Counted from the stretch's first letter, positions 3,158-63,999 are shown. The stretch: DNA of 64,000 nt from Blepharisma stoltei ATCC 30299 (GCA_965603825.1 CBFDEM010000036.1:372001-436000), one strand, 5' to 3'. The notes: a model not told the origin generated them from the sequence alone. Made by a program: numbers and translations.

Positions 3158-4606
3158 ATGCGAGACGAAAAACCTTTACTCCCTAGCCCTTCCAAAACAC
3201 AAATTGGCCTGGTTTATTTTTTGATTTTTACAATTGAATTTGGTATTCCCTAATCAGAATATGCACTAGAATATGTATTTATTAACCCTTTTTTTAATCG
3301 GCACAATTGCTCGGTTATTTTTCTTTCGACGATTTGGCTATTTCCTTCAATACTCACTTTGATTTCTCAGCCAATTTGGCACAAATACGTCTACTCGGAT
3401 TATTCGACAATTAACTCAAAAAAGAAGCTATTGATTTACTTATTATGCTCTACAACAATACTAGGAATCATCACTTTAATTTCATCAAGTTCAATCGCTG
3501 AGCTATGCTTTCGTGCATCTATTGATGCCAGTGAGAAAGCAAGAAATGCGTCTATTATTCTAGGATTTATAGGATTTATGCTAATTAGTGCAAGCCACAA
3601 CATACTTTTGGAGATTTCACTAGGCTTTAGTGAAGATGAAATAGATAGCTCTTATACAGTTTGCGGGTGCTTTGGAAGAATGGCTGGATTCTTTATTGCT
3701 TCGATCGACTGTTTTGAAATTTATTCATTTTATATGCATTACAACGTAGGGGATAACATAACTTTTTCATTTCTGGCTGTTTCTTTGCTTTATGTTTTGA
3801 CGATGTGCATTGCAGTGCCGTACATTTCGTTCAGAGCCAAGATTGATTCGGCATCAATTTCATACCCCTCAGCTAGCAGTCTGGTTTCTTTACCTTGAAA
3901 AATGAAATTATTAATGCTTACTTATTTTTTGACCTTAGGAAGCAATTTATTGATATCAATTTATGCGACTTCGTGGGTATCAATGGCAATTTGGGATGAA
4001 AATTATATAAAAGAAGACCAGAGAAGATACAATATGGGACTATCATGGGGAGCCTTTACGCTGTTGATATCTTGCTTAGTAACCATTGTAGTAATTTATG
4101 TTATCCCTCTGATAAGAAAATACCAAATTTTGAGAGATTCTTACATTTTAGGCTTAACCCACCTAATTTGTGCAATTGCTTTAATTACTACACACGAAGT
4201 GGGGAATTTCCAATCAATTTTTATAATTATTCCGATTTGTGGATTTTCGTTTGGAGCAAATATTGTGCTGCCTCAGCATTTATTTTCTGAAATGCAATCT
4301 AACTACTTCAAGCAGTGTGATAAATTGCCTTATTTGCATAGAAGGTCTGAATGCTCTGAGCCTAAAGAGCTTTCAGCTTCTAAATCAAGGCTCTTCGATA
4401 CTATTTCTAACAATGATATCCATCAGATAGGAAAAAATGATTGAAAAGTGCTGCTTAATATGACAAGTCTGATTTCTCAAATCGTTATGTTCGGATTTAT
4501 CCCAGCTCTTATTGCACTCTTTATCGGAGGGGACTACATTAAATGGGGCATGACAACTGCTGGAATTTCAGCACTGGCAGGATCTGTCCTATCATTTGCT
4601 TTATAA
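3158..4606 (+). CDS. MFS sugar transporter, SLC45/sucrose-transporter-like
   Basis: After removing intron 3243-3257 reads EFEYALEYVFINP...IWL..LISQP..SD (SLC45/SUT N-terminal pattern); TGA=W at 3896-3898 and 4442-4444; many hydrophobic segments; TAA 4604-4606. Confidence 0.75.
3243..3257 (+). other. 15-nt spliceosomal intron GTATTCCCTAATCAG
   Basis: GT-AG, A at -6, contains the in-frame TAA that otherwise interrupts the transporter ORF. Confidence 0.9.
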
Positions 4607-4690
4607 TTAGATATAATTTAATTAATCAAATAGAATTCATGGACAGTGGAATTATTGAAATGGTGCATGAAACGCCATTTCAATATATAT

Positions 4691-5326
4691 ATGGAATCAA
4701 GAAAGGCAAACTTAGAACATATCACAAAATTAGACAAACGAAGTGTGTACCCTCCTTCAGTAGACACTTATCTTTTAGCAGATTCCATTGTTAATGATAT
4801 CCAATTTATTCGATCTCTTAACCCTGCAATCATTCTAGAAGTTGGGGTCGGATGCGGGGCAGTTCTCGCGTCTGTTGGGATCAACCTAGGAGAAGCTTAT
4901 TATTTAGGAGTTGACATTAACCCGAAATCAGCCGAATTAGCCAAAACCACGCTTGAAATCAATAATGTACAGATTTCAGAATTTATTGCAATAGATATCT
5001 TTAAAGGAATGAATCTATCAAATAAAGTTGATGTGATTGTGTGCAACCCTCCTTATGTTGCTACAAGTGCTGAGGAGTATCAAGAATGCCAAGCAAGAAT
5101 GGATATAAGCAGCAGCTTTTCTGGAGGAGTTGATGGAAGAGAATTTATTGATAAATTGCTTGAGCTTGCTTCTGATTATTTAAGTGAAAAAGGGGTTATG
5201 TATATGATATGTGAGATTCATAATGGATATATTGATGGAACCAAGGTATCAGAGGAAAGAAAAGGGTGTGAAGGGGTTATGGTATTAAAGAGGACAAAAT
5301 TTTCAGAAATCAGACGAATAAATTAA
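4691..5326 (+). CDS. N6AMT1: HemK2/N6AMT1 (Mtq2-like) eRF1 glutamine methyltransferase
   Basis: VYPPSVDTYLL, LEVGVGCG, DINP, NPPYV, GG.DGREFID motifs. Confidence 0.88.
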   Translation: MESRKANLEHITKLDKRSVYPPSVDTYLLADSIVNDIQFIRSLNPAIILEVGVGCGAVLASVGINLGEAYYLGVDINPKSAELAKTTLEINNVQISEFIAIDIFKGMNLSNKVDVIVCNPPYVATSAEEYQECQARMDISSSFSGGVDGREFIDKLLELASDYLSEKGVMYMICEIHNGYIDGTKVSEERKGCEGVMVLKRTKFSEIRRIN

Positions 5327-55999: not shown

Positions 56000-57649
56000 T
56001 TAATTTGCATACTGCTTCCCGAATGACTGAAGTACAGCAATAAGCCCACTAAGTAATATAGCAATTATTTTTGTAAATAAAGCTGAGTCTGTTCTAATCC
56101 ACATTATTTTTACTGGCCTTAGGGCTTCATCTTGCTTTAATTTTTTAACTACAAAGTTTAAAAGCCTTAGTGATGCCAGAGGTGAAATTTCATTGTCAGA
56201 GTATCCATTTTCTTTCATGATATTTCCTATTATATTTAATAATAAATCTTTATGAATGCCAAATGCTTCATTTGATTCAATACCTAAAAAAACCATATAT
56301 GTCACAACTCCTAAGCATAATAAAGTAAGATATAGAAGCGAAATTAAGGCACCACTTGAAGCACCACCTATAATCCCAAAAATTTGCAAAAAATAAATTA
56401 AAATCATAGTAATAGACAGAGGCAAGACAAGAGAGATGTATGCAAACACCCGAGCTGTATACTTTCGGCCAAAATCAAGAAGTGCAACTCTCAATGAATA
56501 CCAAGACTCAATAGTTCTTGGATCTCGCATATCCAATACAGGGATGTCATTTAGATAAGTAATCGTATGCTTTATTTCTAAGTCACTGATCATTGCAGTG
56601 CATTCATCCATAAGTAGTTTTTTCCTTCTGATATCACATATGCCAATGTAAATGAACGTCAAAAAGCCTCAAACTTCTCATAGAGAAAATAAACCACTTA
56701 TAACTGCAAATAAAATAAATAAAGGGTTGTTATCATTTGCGAAGCTTCCATAAATCCAATATTTTGCAATAAAAGGTAAAATTGTGTAGATTAGTGATAA
56801 TAAAATTGTAAAACGCATACACCATTTACTAATTACATCTTCTGATATTTGTTTTACATATAAGCTTGCTATGACTATAAGAGGATAGCACTGAGTATTT
56901 TTGCAGTGTGATGAATTATCATGAAAAATTTCAACTCCACTTTTTTCGATAAGGTCAGTAAGGTACTTATGGCAACTATCTCCTAAAGGAGTCTCGAAAG
57001 AGACACAAAGTTCATAAGGAGACTTGCTCTGCCTTATAAAGCTTTTCTCCAACTCCCAATCAATTACTTCTTGCGGTATATTAAGTCAGGAACGCATAAT
57101 AAATTCTTTTCTAAGAATTTCTCTGTCGATTGTCTTTTCTTTCATTTCTTTTCATCTTTTTTCACTATAAAATCCGTATTTAATAGAAAGCAGAAGCGTC
57201 TTCAATCCGACAATTGCTGCACTACAGAATACAAGCCCTATTCATTCATGAGCTTGCTCAGGGTTTACAAAGCAAAATACAAATGTTATAATAGTTCACA
57301 TGAACGAAAAAAACTCAAGTAAATACAGCCGACTAAAGCAAAAGCTCATATTTGAACACAAGCAATATCCGAAAACTAGATAAAGTAGAGGCAGAATAAA
57401 TGGCCCAAAGAAAATATGTGAAAAGTGGATTGCTACGGCGATAAAAAAATGACTCCAATGGAATTCAATTTTATATTGAGTGTCTTCGTCAAGTGATTTC
57501 ATTATTTTAAATTGAGACAATTTGGTTGGATTTCTATAAGAGCTAAATAGCGTAAGAGTGCTTCTTTTTCCTGACTGAAAGAACGAATCGGTTTCAAATT
57601 CTCTAGAGTTTGCACTAATGGGAGCTATTTGTAAACTGTTGTTTGCCAT
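56000..57649 (-). CDS. PHTF-like / 7TM ion-channel (gustatory-receptor superfamily)-like membrane protein, copy A (549 aa)
   Basis: Single frame through several TGA=W; about seven TM segments; P..D......IESW..LR..L.DFG and C-terminal RPV.I..I..DSAL..KI...L.SG....Q. Confidence 0.7.
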
Positions 57650-58420
57650 TATTTTATTCAGATTTATTGTTGTTAATTAAAATTAATTTAAGTGAATTTC
57701 CAAAATTATTTTAAGAATCAAAATAAAAAATCCGCATCTAATTTGCTATAATATATTGAAAAGAAAAATATAATAATGTTTTTAGGATAATTAATGCAAT
57801 TAAAATGCATTTATATTTTTATATTTTTATAAGCATTGAGCATTGCATAAAATCACTTGCCAAATTTCAAGTGCTTCAGATGGAAATAGAAATAAAAATT
57901 GATTTTCGGAATTATATTTCAATAAATTTTTAAGACTAAAATAATAAAAATGCATTTAAAGATTTTTAAAGAGTAAGAATTTAGAAATTAAGAGACTATT
58001 TTTCTAAAGCTATTGCCCTGCTTTTAGTTCTTTTGAGTAAATAGCTTATTGATATTAAACCTTAAAGAGATTGACTCTTTTTCTTACCATTTAGACTTTT
58101 AAGTGCTCATTTGCAGTTAAATTGGAGAATATAAACAGAGCAGGTAAGAATATTAAGAAAATCCTTTCCTTGCTCAAAAATTTCATAACTAAATGATAGC
58201 AGCCATAAAATTATCATGAACTGCTTTTCACAAAATGTTAATCAATTATGGAAAAATACTGCCGATCTTTATAATAAAGATTAAAATACTAAATAAGGGC
58301 TTATTTCATAGAAATAGCTTGCTTTCAAAACCCAAAATTATTTTCTTGAGCATCCAAAATAGTTATATTGTTTTAACAAATAGAACATTAAATTAAATAA
58401 TAATTTGATTACATTACAAT

Positions 58421-60052
58421 TTAATCCCCTAATAGCATCTGAGCAATTGCTACGAGACCACTTAATAAGACTGTGACTATTTTAGTAAGTAAAGCTGAGT
58501 CAAGCTTGATTCCCATAATCATAACTGGCCTTAAAAGTTCGTCTTGTTCAAGCTTTTGGACTAAATATTTCAATCATTTAGCAGTTACTAAGATATCTTC
58601 ATTTTGTTCTTTATAATCAGAATTTTTCATAATGTGGCCAATGATATTTAAAATTAAATCACGGTGCAGGCCAAATGCTCTATTCAAATATATCCCAGAA
58701 AAAACCATATAGGTAGTAAGAGTTAGTCCAACCATAGTCAGGAACATTACTGATATAAATGCCCCACTTGAAGCCCCTCCCAAAATTCTGAAAGCTTGCA
58801 ATAAAAGAAGTGCGATCATTGCCACTGACGTTGGAAGAACCAAAGAAGAATAAGCAAATATTCGATAAGTATATTTTCTTCCAAAATCCAATGAAGCTAC
58901 TCTCAAGACATACCAGGATTCTATAGTTTTTAAATCATACATATTTCCACTTGGAAACTCTTGATTATATCAAACTGTATCTTTTATATCTAAATCACTA
59001 ATCATAGCTGTACATTCATTCAGCAAGATATTCCTCCTCTTGAAATCCAGCATTCCAATGTATACAAACATGAGCAATCTCCATCCTTCAAATCAGCTTT
59101 CAATTGAGTTTGTCACTGCGAGTGCAATTAAGAGAGCATTACAATCATCTTCATTAAAACCTCCATAAATTCAGCATATCGTTATGAAGGGTAAAGAGGA
59201 ATAAATCATCCCTAGAAGAAAAATCACAAAGATTTCCCCTTTAAAATGAATTTTTTGGTCAGCTTTTCTAATCAACACCCTCCCAAGGACACTTAGAGGG
59301 TAGCATTGGGTATTATTTGTATGAGTGCCAGAGTCATGAGTAGTTTCTATTCCAAGGTCCGACTTAAGATCTGTCAAAAATTTATGGCAGCTTTCTTTTA
59401 TCTCAGCTTCAAACGTAAAGCAAAGCTCACTTGGGCATTTACCGAGTCTTTTAAAACTTTTTTCTAGTTCACTGTCAATAATTGATTCAGGAATATTAAG
59501 CCATGAAATCATAAGATATTCTGAATTTAATGCATCATTATCAAGGACCTCGCTTTTCATTAAATTTCACTTCTTCTCTGAATAGTAACCATATTTTATT
59601 GTAATCAAAGCAGTTTTTAAAACAACAATCGCAAGAGCAGAAACAACAAGCCCTATTCATTTAGAGGCTAAGCTAGGGAAAGCTATACAAAATACGATAT
59701 TTAAAATTGTGCAAATATAGGTAGCAAACTCAAACAAATAGTGCTTTGATCTTTTGAAGTACATGTTTTTACATAAATTTGTTCCGAAAATTTTATAAAT
59801 TGCAGGTATTGATATTGGGCCAATAAATATATGAATAAGATGAATTGCGAGGGAGATCAGAAATTGTTTAAAATGATATTTAAATTCGTATTGAGCATCT
59901 TCATCATGTGTTTTTATCTTTTTGAGTAGAGCTAACTTGCTTACTCTTTTATTCTCTACTGCATTACTGTTCCTCCCTGATGAACTTAAAAGTGTTTCTG
60001 TATCTTTTATGGACTGATCATGTGGAAAAGCCTCAACTACACTATTAGACAT
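58421..60052 (-). CDS. PHTF-like / 7TMIC-like membrane protein, copy B (543 aa)
   Basis: Paralog of A and C over the full length; TAA 58421-58423. Confidence 0.7.
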
Positions 60053-60083
60053 TAATTATAATACTCATTAATTAATACTCTAA

Positions 60084-61727
60084 TTACAATGATGTGCCGC
60101 TTCTCATCATCATCTGAACAAGACCAAGAACACCACTAATTAAGACGGTAACTACTTTAGCGAGCAATGCTGAATCAAGTCTGATACCCATGATCATGAC
60201 TGGTCTCAGTATTTCGTCTTGCTCTAGCTTTTGGACTAAATATTGCAGAATCTTAATAGTTGCTAACACATTTTCGTTTTCCTCATTATAATTATTATCT
60301 TTCATGATGTGGCCAACGATATTTAATATCAAATCTCTATGCAAACTGAATGCTCTGTTGAGCTCCATCCCTGAAAAAGTCATATATATAATGAGAATCA
60401 GCATCACAATAGTAAAAAACAGCAACGATATTAAAGCTCCACTTGAGGCTCCTCCTATAATCCCAAAAGCCTGCAACAAAAATAAGGCAACCATTGCGCA
60501 AGACAAAGGCAAAACAAAAGAAGAATAAGCAAATATCCGATACGTGAATTTTCTCCCAAAATCTAATGAGGCCGTCCGCAAAGTGTACCAAGACTCTATA
60601 GTTCTTAAGTCGTGCATGTCTGCGCTTGGGAAGTTGCGGACAAACCATACTGTATCTTTTATATCAATATCGCTGATCATGGCTGTGCACTCATCAATCA
60701 TAATCTTTTTCCTTCTAAAATCACAAATCCCGATATATACAAACATTAGCAGTCTCCAACCTTCAAAGCAGCTTTCAATGGAATTTATAACTGCAATTAC
60801 AATTAATAAAGCATTACTATCTTCTTCAAAGAAACCGCCATTAATATATCATACCGTTGTGAAAGGTAAAATACAATAGACAATATTCAGCATAAGGACA
60901 AAATATGTTTCGAATTTATAGTGAGCTTTTTTATCAGCTTCTTTGATGAGCATTTTCCCAAGGACACTGAGGGGATAGCATGGGTTTTCGTTGGAATGAG
61001 AAATGCCTTCATGAACAGTTTCTATTCCAAGGTTAATCTGAAAGCTTGCAAGCAGATTATGATAGCACTCCTGCAGAGGTGTTTCAAACATAAAGCACAG
61101 TTCATGTGGGTTTTTGCTCTGCCGCTTAAAGCTTTTTTCAAGCTCACTATCGATAACTGATTCAGGAATTGAATACCATGCTAATGCAAGGTACTCTGAG
61201 TCCAAAAAACTGCGCTCAAGTGTTTCTTCCTTCATTGCCCTTCACTTCTTCTGAGAGTAGTATCCATATTTTATTGAAAGAAAAGAATTCTTGAGAGCGA
61301 TCACAGCCAGAACAGAAACAACAAGCCCAATTCATTTAAACGCTAGTTCTGGAAAAGCTATGCAAAAAGCAAGATTTAAAATGATACATACATGTGTAAA
61401 AATTTCTTTTATATAATGATAATTTCATCTGAAGTGCATATTTTTACACAAATTTGTGCCAAAAATTTTGAAAATGATAGGTAAAGATATTGGACCTAAA
61501 AATGTATGAATGAGGTGAATTGCCAGTGCAATTAGAAACTGATTAGAATGATAAATAAATTCATATTGGGCATCTTCATCGTGAGTTTTTATCTTCTTTA
61601 GATGGCTTAGCTTTTTCATCCTGCTGCTTCCAATTGCTGTGCTGCCTCTTCTGGAAAAGTTAAAAAATCCCTCTGACTCCTTTGGCGAATCACTTGACGA
61701 GGAAACCTGAGCTGGGCTATTAGACAT
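60084..61727 (-). CDS. PHTF-like / 7TMIC-like membrane protein, copy C (547 aa)
   Basis: Paralog of A and B; ORF pieces 61425-61727, 60849-61235 and 60084-60746 share one frame. Confidence 0.7.
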
Positions 61728-61751
61728 TAATTATATAAATATAAATTTTAT

Positions 61752-63999
61752 TTATTCTATTTGCAAATGTGCAAAAGGTGAGTTTAATTTGCATCTCTAT
61801 ATTAAAGATTACCATTTCATATTCTTCTTTGATGTTGGAACGCCTGACTATTTTATTGTTTTCCTTTCGGTCGCTGATTTCTTGGATAGTTGACAGCCTG
61901 CTATTTATTTCGTTCCTTGCGTTCTTTATATACTGTAATCTAATCTCTTTGCTTTTCGCCAGTTTTTGCTTGTCTTCCAGTCCCATATTAATTGGATGGA
62001 ATTTTTTGGCTGAGAATCTTTCTTCGTCGCTTGCATACATTCCAGCGTCTACTGGAGGGAGATGCTGATAAAAAGTGTCTTTATGCGGTGGGTTTGCCCC
62101 ATATCTTGTATTTGAGACTAGTTGAATAAGTTTATCGTCAGGTCGGAATTGGTTCCTTAGGGTTTCATGAGCTTTATTAAAAAAATCAGTTTGATTCATT
62201 TGCGATTTTAAGAAGCCAGATGAAGGCTGAGAAATGTTCATGAATTTTTTCGAATCCTCTTGTAGTCTTTCGCTGTTCGATTGTATAATATTTGTCTGGA
62301 TATGCCTTGAGAATTCTCTGAAGTTAACATGCCCACTTTTTTCTTCATCTAAAAATGCCATTAAGTCATCTACATCTCTTTGATCATGAACAATATTATT
62401 GACTTCTAAAGCCCCTTCCAGATCTTCTCTAGTAATAAACCCATCTCCATCTCGGTCGAACTTTTTAAAAATCTGGACACTTCTTTGCGAGCCTTGCACA
62501 AACATCTTTTCTTCAATCTCTTTGAGAATTTTTTTAATATTTGTATCAGAGCAAGGATCAAAGTCTTTTGTTTGCCTGAACGGAGGAACTGCCCTTTTGA
62601 TAATATGCAGCTCTTGAGCAGCCTTTGTGTCTTCCATAAATATATTGTTTGTTATATCTGGAACAGATGCAAGGCCATCTTTATTGTAAATATAAGAAGA
62701 TAAGAAGCCTTCTAGTTCTTTTTTGGTTATTTTGATTGTTTGTTTCTCTTTTAGCTTGCTAATAACAAAATCTTTTAACTGCTCTTGAGATACTTTGCCA
62801 TCAAAACCAGCTTTTGCAAGATCTTCATTGAGTTCTTCTTGAGACTCAACTCCTTCTCTTAAAAATTGCCTTATCTTGCGCGCTCTCTGGAATATATTAT
62901 CAAGCTGGTTGACAGGAGCTTTTTGTCGGTCAATTATTGTCAGACTCCCTTTATATTGCATTGTATTATGCTTTGGTGATTTTCCATGAGTCTGCTCAGC
63001 TTCTAGCTTATTATACTCTTGAATTAAAGGATTAACAGGGGGGCCAACTTCTTCAAGCCTTGCAGCATTTCTTGAGTCGAAATCATTTAATTTTCCTATA
63101 AATTCTCTATAATTTAATCCCCCTTCATTTCCTCCCATATCCATATATAGCAACTTCCAATGTTTTTGATTCGTCACACTTGTAGGTAAATCCATGTTAT
63201 TCAAAATGTTGGCAAAGTATTCAAAATTTATTTTTCCGCTTTTATTTTTATCTCTTCTTATAAATTGTGCAGCCAGCCCATTTATTTTTTCCTTTAAATG
63301 GATTTTAAGCTCATTTTGAATTTTCTTTGTGTGCTGGTTTACTGCAGACTCATGCATTTCAAGCAGTTTCTTTTCTGTATCAGGAGATGGGTCTTCTTCA
63401 GTCAAAGTTGCTAAGTCCACATTTAGCCTATCATCTTGATCAAAAATAAGCTGCATAAATTCATCTAAATTAAGAGCTCCTGTGTGACTTTGATTTGCAC
63501 TTGCCACTAGGACTCTGGCTTCTATCAAGTTTATAGGAATTCCAATTTTATTTACCATTTTGCATACGTCTTCGGGCCTTAAAACGCCTAGAGACCTTTC
63601 ATCCCATTGATTAAAAATTTTTCTGAAGTCCGTTCTATTTGCATAACGCCTTCTCATTGTCCTTCTGATATCAGCAACTTTTTTTAAGTCAACTTTTCCT
63701 TCAAGTGTCCGTTTGTGGTCCATATGTACAAGCTGAGTTTCTTGTATTGCTATTTTATTATCAATTTCTTTGGTTTTATGGTATTTATCGTATTTTTTAA
63801 CGTTTTTTTCTTCTTCATGGGATGGGCGATTAGCTTTCATTTGCGGATTTTTCAGGTAGGGATCGTTATCTCCCCCAGTAAATAAATTTTCTCCTTCTAA
63901 GTTTGAGGTTTTGGGACGAGCAATTGGCTCCCTTGGTTTTATTTTTTTGTGGTGGGTGTCGTAAAAAGTTGTTTGAGATTGAAGTGGGTTGTCTCTCAT
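61752..63999 (-). CDS. Multi-EF-hand calcium-binding protein (5' end may extend beyond window)
   Basis: EF loops DKNKSGKINFEYF, DRDGDGFITREDL, DEEKSGHVNFREF; 16-nt intron 61797-61812 gives end ...EMRCKLNSPFAHLQIE*. Confidence 0.85.
61797..61812 (-). other. 16-nt intron GTAATCTTTAATATAG
   Basis: GTA...A(-6)...TAG; splicing removes an AT-rich read-through tail and the overlap with the next gene's ATG. Confidence 0.8.

Follow-up and report, generated by a model that had tools for sequence, protein, structure and literature searches.

Three tandem genes of the ciliate Blepharisma stoltei encode proteins with a predicted seven-transmembrane ion channel fold

We analysed a 64,000-nucleotide stretch of DNA from the ciliate Blepharisma stoltei ATCC 30299 (GCA_965603825.1, CBFDEM010000036.1:372001-436000; hereafter the window), in which positions 56000-61727 hold a tandem array of three paralogous genes, here called A, B and C. 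By a confident structural model of the gene C protein, this family, which lacks any Pfam match, is predicted to be part of the 7TMIC (seven-transmembrane ion channel) superfamily of odorant receptors (OR) and gustatory receptors (GR). For this ciliate family we also document how the genes are built, the signs of their expression, the selection acting on them and the positions that are conserved. The proteins are not of a new kind: Benton and Himmel (2023) and Himmel et al. (2023) had already reported 7TMICs like them. Taken as one, we consider it probable that A, B and C are intact, transcribed genes for proteins of the 7TMIC fold that, by analogy with OR/GR, would assemble as a tetrameric channel.

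Predicted fold and conserved positions

The AlphaFold2 model of the gene C protein, built on an alignment of 53 family sequences (A1), had a mean predicted local distance difference test score (pLDDT) of 86.4 and a predicted template modelling score (pTM) of 0.86, with only residues 1-33 disordered. When the model was searched with Foldseek, OR/GR structures took all of the top eight places (probability 0.91-0.99), and in structural comparison only OR/GR chains rose above background, covering about 450 model residues. The best named match in the ESM Atlas was a cluster in which 91% of members carry PF12129, the PHTF domain (template modelling score, TM-score, 0.64 by query, 415 residues, root mean square deviation 4.2). 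An earlier note on this stretch had proposed that the proteins share their fold with OR/GR and PHTF, and these comparisons, together with the seven transmembrane helices (TMs) of the model, bear that out. The alignment-free ESM Atlas model of gene C matched plant DUF3537 (TM-score 0.53/0.65 over 345 residues). We conclude that a 7TMIC superfamily fold is well supported for the predicted proteins of genes A-C. On each structural point open to comparison the model agrees with the superfamily as delimited by Benton and Himmel 2023 (PMC9998090), and its architecture appears PHTF-like (Class-B); assignment of the proteins to the PHTF proper, OR, GR or DUF3537 families is not supported.

Hydropathy and the AlphaFold2 model agreed on the helix layout read in the earlier note: an N-terminal helix, TM1-2, a long loop, TM3-4, a further loop, TM5-6 and a terminal helix. 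In gene C numbering, with all coordinates on the minus strand, the hydrophobic N-terminal helix TM0 spans residues 61-89 (61461-61547), carries the motif H..H....GP...P and shows 50% identity among the 11 paralogs found in the genome (see below), second only to the anchor region. TM0 is probably re-entrant, and a re-entrant TM0 loop has been described for 7TMICs. TM1 (103-124) and TM2 (133-155, ending KYGYY) are separated from TM3 (271-296) by intracellular loop 1 (residues 156-270; 60918-61262), a small helical domain of 115 residues with an invariant Trp184. Folded alone, loop 1 gave a pLDDT of 83.5, and comparison of this model with the PDB returned no recognisable fold; in relatives from Euplotes, Halteria and Tetrahymena the loop reaches about 200 residues. 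TM4 (306-351, 46 residues), TM5 (374-420, modelled as 374-389 and 392-420) and TM6 (429-477, 49 residues) are predicted to be very long helices. The last helix (residues 485-546; 60090-60275) is split in the model into TM7a (485-507) and TM7b (519-546), joined by an RPVxIMG linker, with [S/T]531-x6-Q538 in TM7b.

Each outer loop has 8-9 residues, whereas the inner segments have 115, about 60 and about 60. Lysine and arginine were counted 13 times in 156-270, 10 times in 335-395 and 7 times in 455-518, compared with once in 125-133 and not at all in 297-305 and 418-430. This charge pattern supports placing the start of TM1 inside; provided that TM0 is re-entrant, the N-terminus would be cytosolic and the pattern would support 7TMIC topology.

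Conservation was highest where TM4 and TM5 extend into the cytosol (residues 331-400; 60528-60737), the presumed anchor; the anchor domain is the tetramer-holding region of OR/GR and the most conserved part of 7TMICs. Residues W380, R384, G391, R397, N457, H463 and G514 were each conserved in at least 90% of the 53-sequence alignment. These and D336 and R339 are nearly invariant, and all lie in the cytosolic TM4-6 extensions or the 7a-7b linker. The motifs reported in the earlier note (P..D......IESWY.LR...LDFGRK, G...N.AF..H and RPV.IMGI.LDSALL...) occur in gene C as written and coincide with the most conserved positions of the 53 sequences. Conservation was lowest at the N-terminus, in loop 1 and in the intramembrane and outer stretches of TM3-TM4.

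Gene structure, expression and selection in the tandem array

Translated in the organism's own code (table 4, TGA=Trp), gene A (56000-57649, minus strand) encodes 549 residues, gene B (58421-60052, minus strand) 543 and gene C (60084-61727, minus strand; the copy that was modelled) 547. The genes are co-directional and uninterrupted in this code, with 6, 6 and 4 in-frame TGA codons (16 altogether), and each ends in TAA, in agreement with the three intact paralogs of about 545 residues proposed in the earlier note. That note had also described nine open reading frame (ORF) fragments. Fragmentation under the standard or bacterial code was reproduced, with A, B and C split into 7, 7 and 5 pieces, but the count is approximate, about 10 of these pieces being ORFs of at least 40 residues. 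Across the 11 genomic paralogs, 42 in-frame TGA codons stand beside 62 TGG. Both codons occur in each of the three invariant Trp columns (TGA/TGG 7/4, 4/7 and 3/8), and the other in-frame TGAs of the alignment fall in columns of aromatic or hydrophobic residues. This evidence from within the family supports reading TGA as Trp, in agreement with the B. stoltei ATCC 30299 somatic genome as published (41 Mb), in which UGA is tryptophan (PMC9942806).

A public database protein (P0004) matches the gene C translation letter for letter over 547 residues, so that gene C, at least, is present among public gene models in the correct code. The retrieved Blepharisma paralogs are likewise intact proteins in public annotation, and those named in UniRef (P0001, P0002, P0003, P0005 and P0019) are called 'Odorant receptor'. 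The earlier expectation that a standard-code annotation would miss the family is thus moot. The UniRef label itself overstates knowledge, with no 7tm_6 or other Pfam match behind it.

To count paralogs, as the earlier note had suggested, the family profile was run against the B. stoltei ATCC 30299 assembly (41.46 Mb, 64 contigs), which contained exactly 11 loci: three in this window (contig C36), three on C25, two on C31 and one each on C57, C14 and C27. Tandem clusters hold 8 of the 11. Searches by tblastn with all 11 paralogs found no family remnant in the AT-rich 771-bp spacer between A and B (57650-58420), and nothing meaningful as a fourth or decayed copy there or in the rest of the 64-kb window. 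The two spacers are very unequal, the B-C spacer (60053-60083) being only 31 bp. A separate observation concerns one tandem paralog on C25 (269449-270957, minus strand), which has TAA where all others have the conserved Glu of 'QDEILRPV', although the frame beyond it stays open and conserved through TM7b. This copy is either a very recent pseudogene or a gene whose product stops short of the pore helix, unless the TAA is read through.

Four runs, all belonging to one study of 2022, gave transcript-like contigs of presumed RNA origin that tile the three coding regions exactly and contain no joints. Cover extended over 56000-57648 for gene A (in four runs, no joints), 58433-60048 for gene B, and from 60036 or 60080 to 61727 for gene C. 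No contig in any of the four runs lay over about 57719-58291 of the A-B spacer, and a single run extended into its gene-B end (58292-58420). Contigs without joints imply that A, B and C have no introns, and the genes look transcribed and unspliced. The gene-confined cover and a second contig set, 95-99% identical, would fit the published two-strain conjugation RNA-seq series (PMC9942806). Contigs of genes B and C overlap by about 13 nt (60036-60048).

In the proposed frames, the variant contigs differed at 31 sites, 25 synonymous and 6 non-synonymous, of which gene A contributed 8 and 1, respectively. Between the paralogs, the proportion of differing non-synonymous sites (pN) was 0.22-0.34 and that of synonymous sites (pS) 0.65-0.80, with synonymous sites saturated; the ratio of non-synonymous to synonymous substitution rates (dN/dS) was about 0.13-0.25 where computable, and about 0.17 for B versus C. 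Amino acid identity was 63% for B-C, 49% for A-B and 47% for A-C, and the contig 57 singleton (P0005), at 56-57% identity to B and C, is nearer to them than gene A is. Because synonymous sites are saturated, identity is 47-63% and dN/dS is low, A, B and C are old duplicates under purifying selection and not the product of a recent burst. The description of the family as 'locally expanded' therefore holds for the tandem arrangement, but the duplications are old.

Relation to known 7TMICs

A Pfam scan of the gene pieces, a TGA-free paralog (P0001) and the 53 family members gave nothing above cut-off, and a word-indexed protein search returned only Blepharisma paralogs, with no PHTF sequence and neither gene A nor gene B. 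A HMMER scan of the last 254 residues of gene C against 1.84 billion representatives recovered 190 proteins at E <=1e-3. Named relatives came from Blepharisma, Euplotes, Halteria and Tetrahymena, including Q24BS0 of Tetrahymena thermophila (814 residues, 'transmembrane protein, putative'), and a euglenid transcriptome held further relatives, as did a marine metagenome-assembled genome labelled 'Euryarchaeota archaeon', on a prokaryotic-looking contig.

According to the 2023 reports, 7TMICs number in the thousands and include PHTF-like proteins in unicellular eukaryotes as well as look-alikes labelled prokaryotic. The Class-B 7TMICs of unicellular eukaryotes, as set out by Himmel, Moi and Benton 2023, have TM0, seven TMs, long TM4-6 and a split TM7. 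They also have a long intracellular TM2-TM3 loop, given there as a hallmark of PHTF-like Class-B 7TMICs (10.1101/2023.08.30.555482), and conservation centred on the anchor and TM7b, as in the Blepharisma family. Tandem arrays like those of Blepharisma do not appear in that account. Ciliates are not mentioned in the text of the 2023 7TMIC papers and one supplement, so far as these sources were available, and our literature search found no paper tying Blepharisma to the 7TMIC family.

The same preprint reports archaeal-labelled metagenome relatives of the PHTF-like cluster (10.1101/2023.08.30.555482), with which the 'Euryarchaeota archaeon' relative found here (P0115) may be compared. P0115 has 493 residues, 48 cluster members and, over the C-terminal half, 25% identity (E 1.4e-6). 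Its gene lies at 3631-5112 of a metagenome contig in ENA, among small, prokaryote-like neighbours (Copper-bind, SnoaL_2). This context fits the published idea that PHTF-like 7TMICs moved from eukaryotes to prokaryotes.

Predicted structures of animal PHTF1, PHTF2 and Phtf (PMC9998090) and of the ciliate protein superimpose, with the extra loop at the same position. They differ from the Blepharisma family in having the N-terminal domain PF12129, in size (about 760 versus about 545 residues), in paralog number (one or two versus eleven) and in loop 1, which exceeds 300 residues and is largely unstructured (PMC9998090), whereas that of Blepharisma has 115 ordered residues. Insect OR/GR proteins (Orco, MhOr5, AgamOR28, AaegOR10, BmGr9, DmGr43a and DmGr64a) are 7-12% identical to the ciliate protein; their 7tm_6/7tm_7 matches are absent from the ciliate proteins, which have a large loop 1. 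Plant DUF3537 proteins (Class-A 7TMICs) are alike in the ESM model match and in feature similarity (0.91), but lack the long loop 1, and their family domain PF12056 is unmatched in the Blepharisma genome. In the ESM Atlas feature search with gene C, animal TMEM39 (PF10271) clusters also scored 0.93 (198/256 features) beside DUF3537, which we record only as a lead.

Candidate channel mechanism and other readings

The most likely mechanism, by analogy, would be a tetrameric cation channel built like the OR/GR channels. Four subunits would join through the conserved cytosolic anchor, made up of the TM4, TM5 and TM6 extensions and TM7a, and TM7b would line a cation pore at the centre, contributing a Ser/Thr ring and, near the outer end, a Gln. 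Gating specificity would be set by the more variable outer halves of TM1-TM4, and the family-specific 115-residue loop 1 may be a cytosolic regulatory or docking module. Support for the pore role of TM7b consists of its conserved polar positions: position 531 is Ser or Thr in 42 of 48 sequences, position 538 is Gln in 29 of 48, then a hydrophobic residue, and position 524 is mostly polar. The spacing of S/T531-x6-Q538 equals the T...Q spacing of the GR pore motif TYhhhhhQF, which the ciliate TM7b resembles only in part. In BmGr9, T429 and T436 form hydroxyl rings and Q443 swings into the open pore.

Several results weigh against a 7TMIC channel. The structural alignment ends with model residue 542 on BmGr9 residue 444, which puts TM7b about one helical turn off the motif register. 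With the two registers at odds, Q538 can be equated with the GR gating Gln only as an unproven lead. The Foldseek E-values were weak (0.02-0.07), and TM-scores to solved OR/GR structures were 0.3-0.46. PF12129 (PHTF) had no match at E <=10 in the gene pieces, P0001 or the genome (the genome search being without a positive control), and none at E <=1 in the 53 A1 members. PF02949 (7tm_6) had no match in the proteins and a sole genomic match, at an unrelated locus (E 0.16); PF08395 (7tm_7) had none at the three loci or in family members and no significant one in the genome, and PF12056 (DUF3537) gave nothing significant in proteins or genome. The family profile found no OR/GR among PDB sequences, its only match being a chance one to an acetylcholine-receptor subunit (E 0.07). 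Lastly, channel activity has been demonstrated for no Class-B or PHTF protein, and rat PHTF1 resides in the endoplasmic reticulum (ER) (PMC9998090).

This lack of a sequence-level link to 7TMIC families would suit convergence or a modelling artefact, in which AlphaFold2 packed an unrelated multi-pass family, such as a transporter or a DUF2921 Tul1-type E3 ligase, in an OR-like way. Helical bundles may reach middling Z-scores by chance, and the C-terminal piece of gene A, alone among the gene pieces, had a sub-threshold match to DUF2921 (PF11145; E 3.3e-5; score 24 bits, cut-off 27.5). We nevertheless judge this extremely unlikely, given that OR/GR chains alone exceeded background over most of the model, that two independent predictors converged on one superfamily, and that the model reproduced the split in TM7, an unusual feature, as well as long TM4-6 helices. 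DUF2921 was rejected as the identity of the family: seven true DUF2921 genes lie elsewhere in the genome, and hhalign of A1 against one of them gave a probability of 0.14%. For the 53 A1 members, which do not include gene A, DUF2921 does not appear among the 25 of 36 weakly matched families that are listed.

If the 7TMIC fold is accepted, the proteins could still act in internal membranes, in the ER or a ciliate organelle, as non-sensory PHTF-like scaffolds, adaptors or organellar channels. The PHTF cluster was the best non-ciliate structural match, and rat PHTF1 is ER-resident and binds the ubiquitin-ligase subunit FEM1B (PMC9998090). Protein docking would also fit with the conserved N-terminal helix and with a cytosolic loop 1 that is both structured and conserved. 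However, PF12129, the FEM1B-binding region in PHTF1, is the domain without a match here, loop 1 is short and ordered instead of long and largely unstructured, and the conserved polar TM7b positions fit a pore. We regard such a role as possible, though on balance unlikely.

A cell-surface role as ligand-gated chemoreceptor channels, for food cues or for a mating signal such as gamone 2 (blepharismone), is in our view doubtful. The fold is that of the ligand-gated OR/GR channels, there are 11 diverged paralogs, mostly in tandem clusters, and the outer and membrane parts of TM1-TM4 vary most while anchor and pore are kept, as in insect ORs; in addition, the gamone receptors are still unidentified (PMC10892320). 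On the other side, chemosensory use of the superfamily is established only in arthropods and is given as 'unknown' for PHTF-like proteins in a 2025 review (PMC12635824), and eleven old paralogs under purifying selection make a small, stable family and not a fast-turnover repertoire. Ciliates that make no use of blepharismone also have relatives, and the contigs cannot rank expression. Food or gamone sensing is therefore a speculation compatible with the data but without specific support. That at least one of the 11 paralogs is a surface ligand-gated channel detecting a small extracellular molecule, in its boldest form the gamone 2 receptor, seems to us very unlikely.

Were such a surface channel found, the OR/GR superfamily would for the first time be shown to serve chemosensation outside animals, and a function would be known for a PHTF-like protein for the first time. 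Class-B 7TMICs span humans to protists, none has a known function, and their channel nature and any pre-animal sensory use are open questions (PMC12635824). Ciliates offer large cells that are electrically excitable, classic read-outs of behaviour and, in Tetrahymena and Paramecium, good genetics. With 11 Blepharisma genes and homologs such as Q24BS0, a family conserved in ciliates would make Class-B 7TMIC function directly testable.

Two observations concern other genes. The seven DUF2921 genes (E 1e-40 to 1e-26) lie at C30:434204, C1:397632, C62:422109, C53:608853, C13:336793, C56:265171 and C13:144076; the one that was read has a C-terminal RING-H2-like Cys/His motif, as in Tul1/FLY-type transmembrane E3 ligases. 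All seven are unrelated to A-C. Upstream of gene C, on the minus strand (61720-63999), is a 759-residue ORF that encodes a pair of EF-hands (E 1.8e-14). The frame of this ORF is open to a TAA at 61720-61722, 8 nt inside the coding start of gene C (ATG 61725-61727), and it seems that either the two coding regions overlap or the true end of the EF-hand ORF differs.

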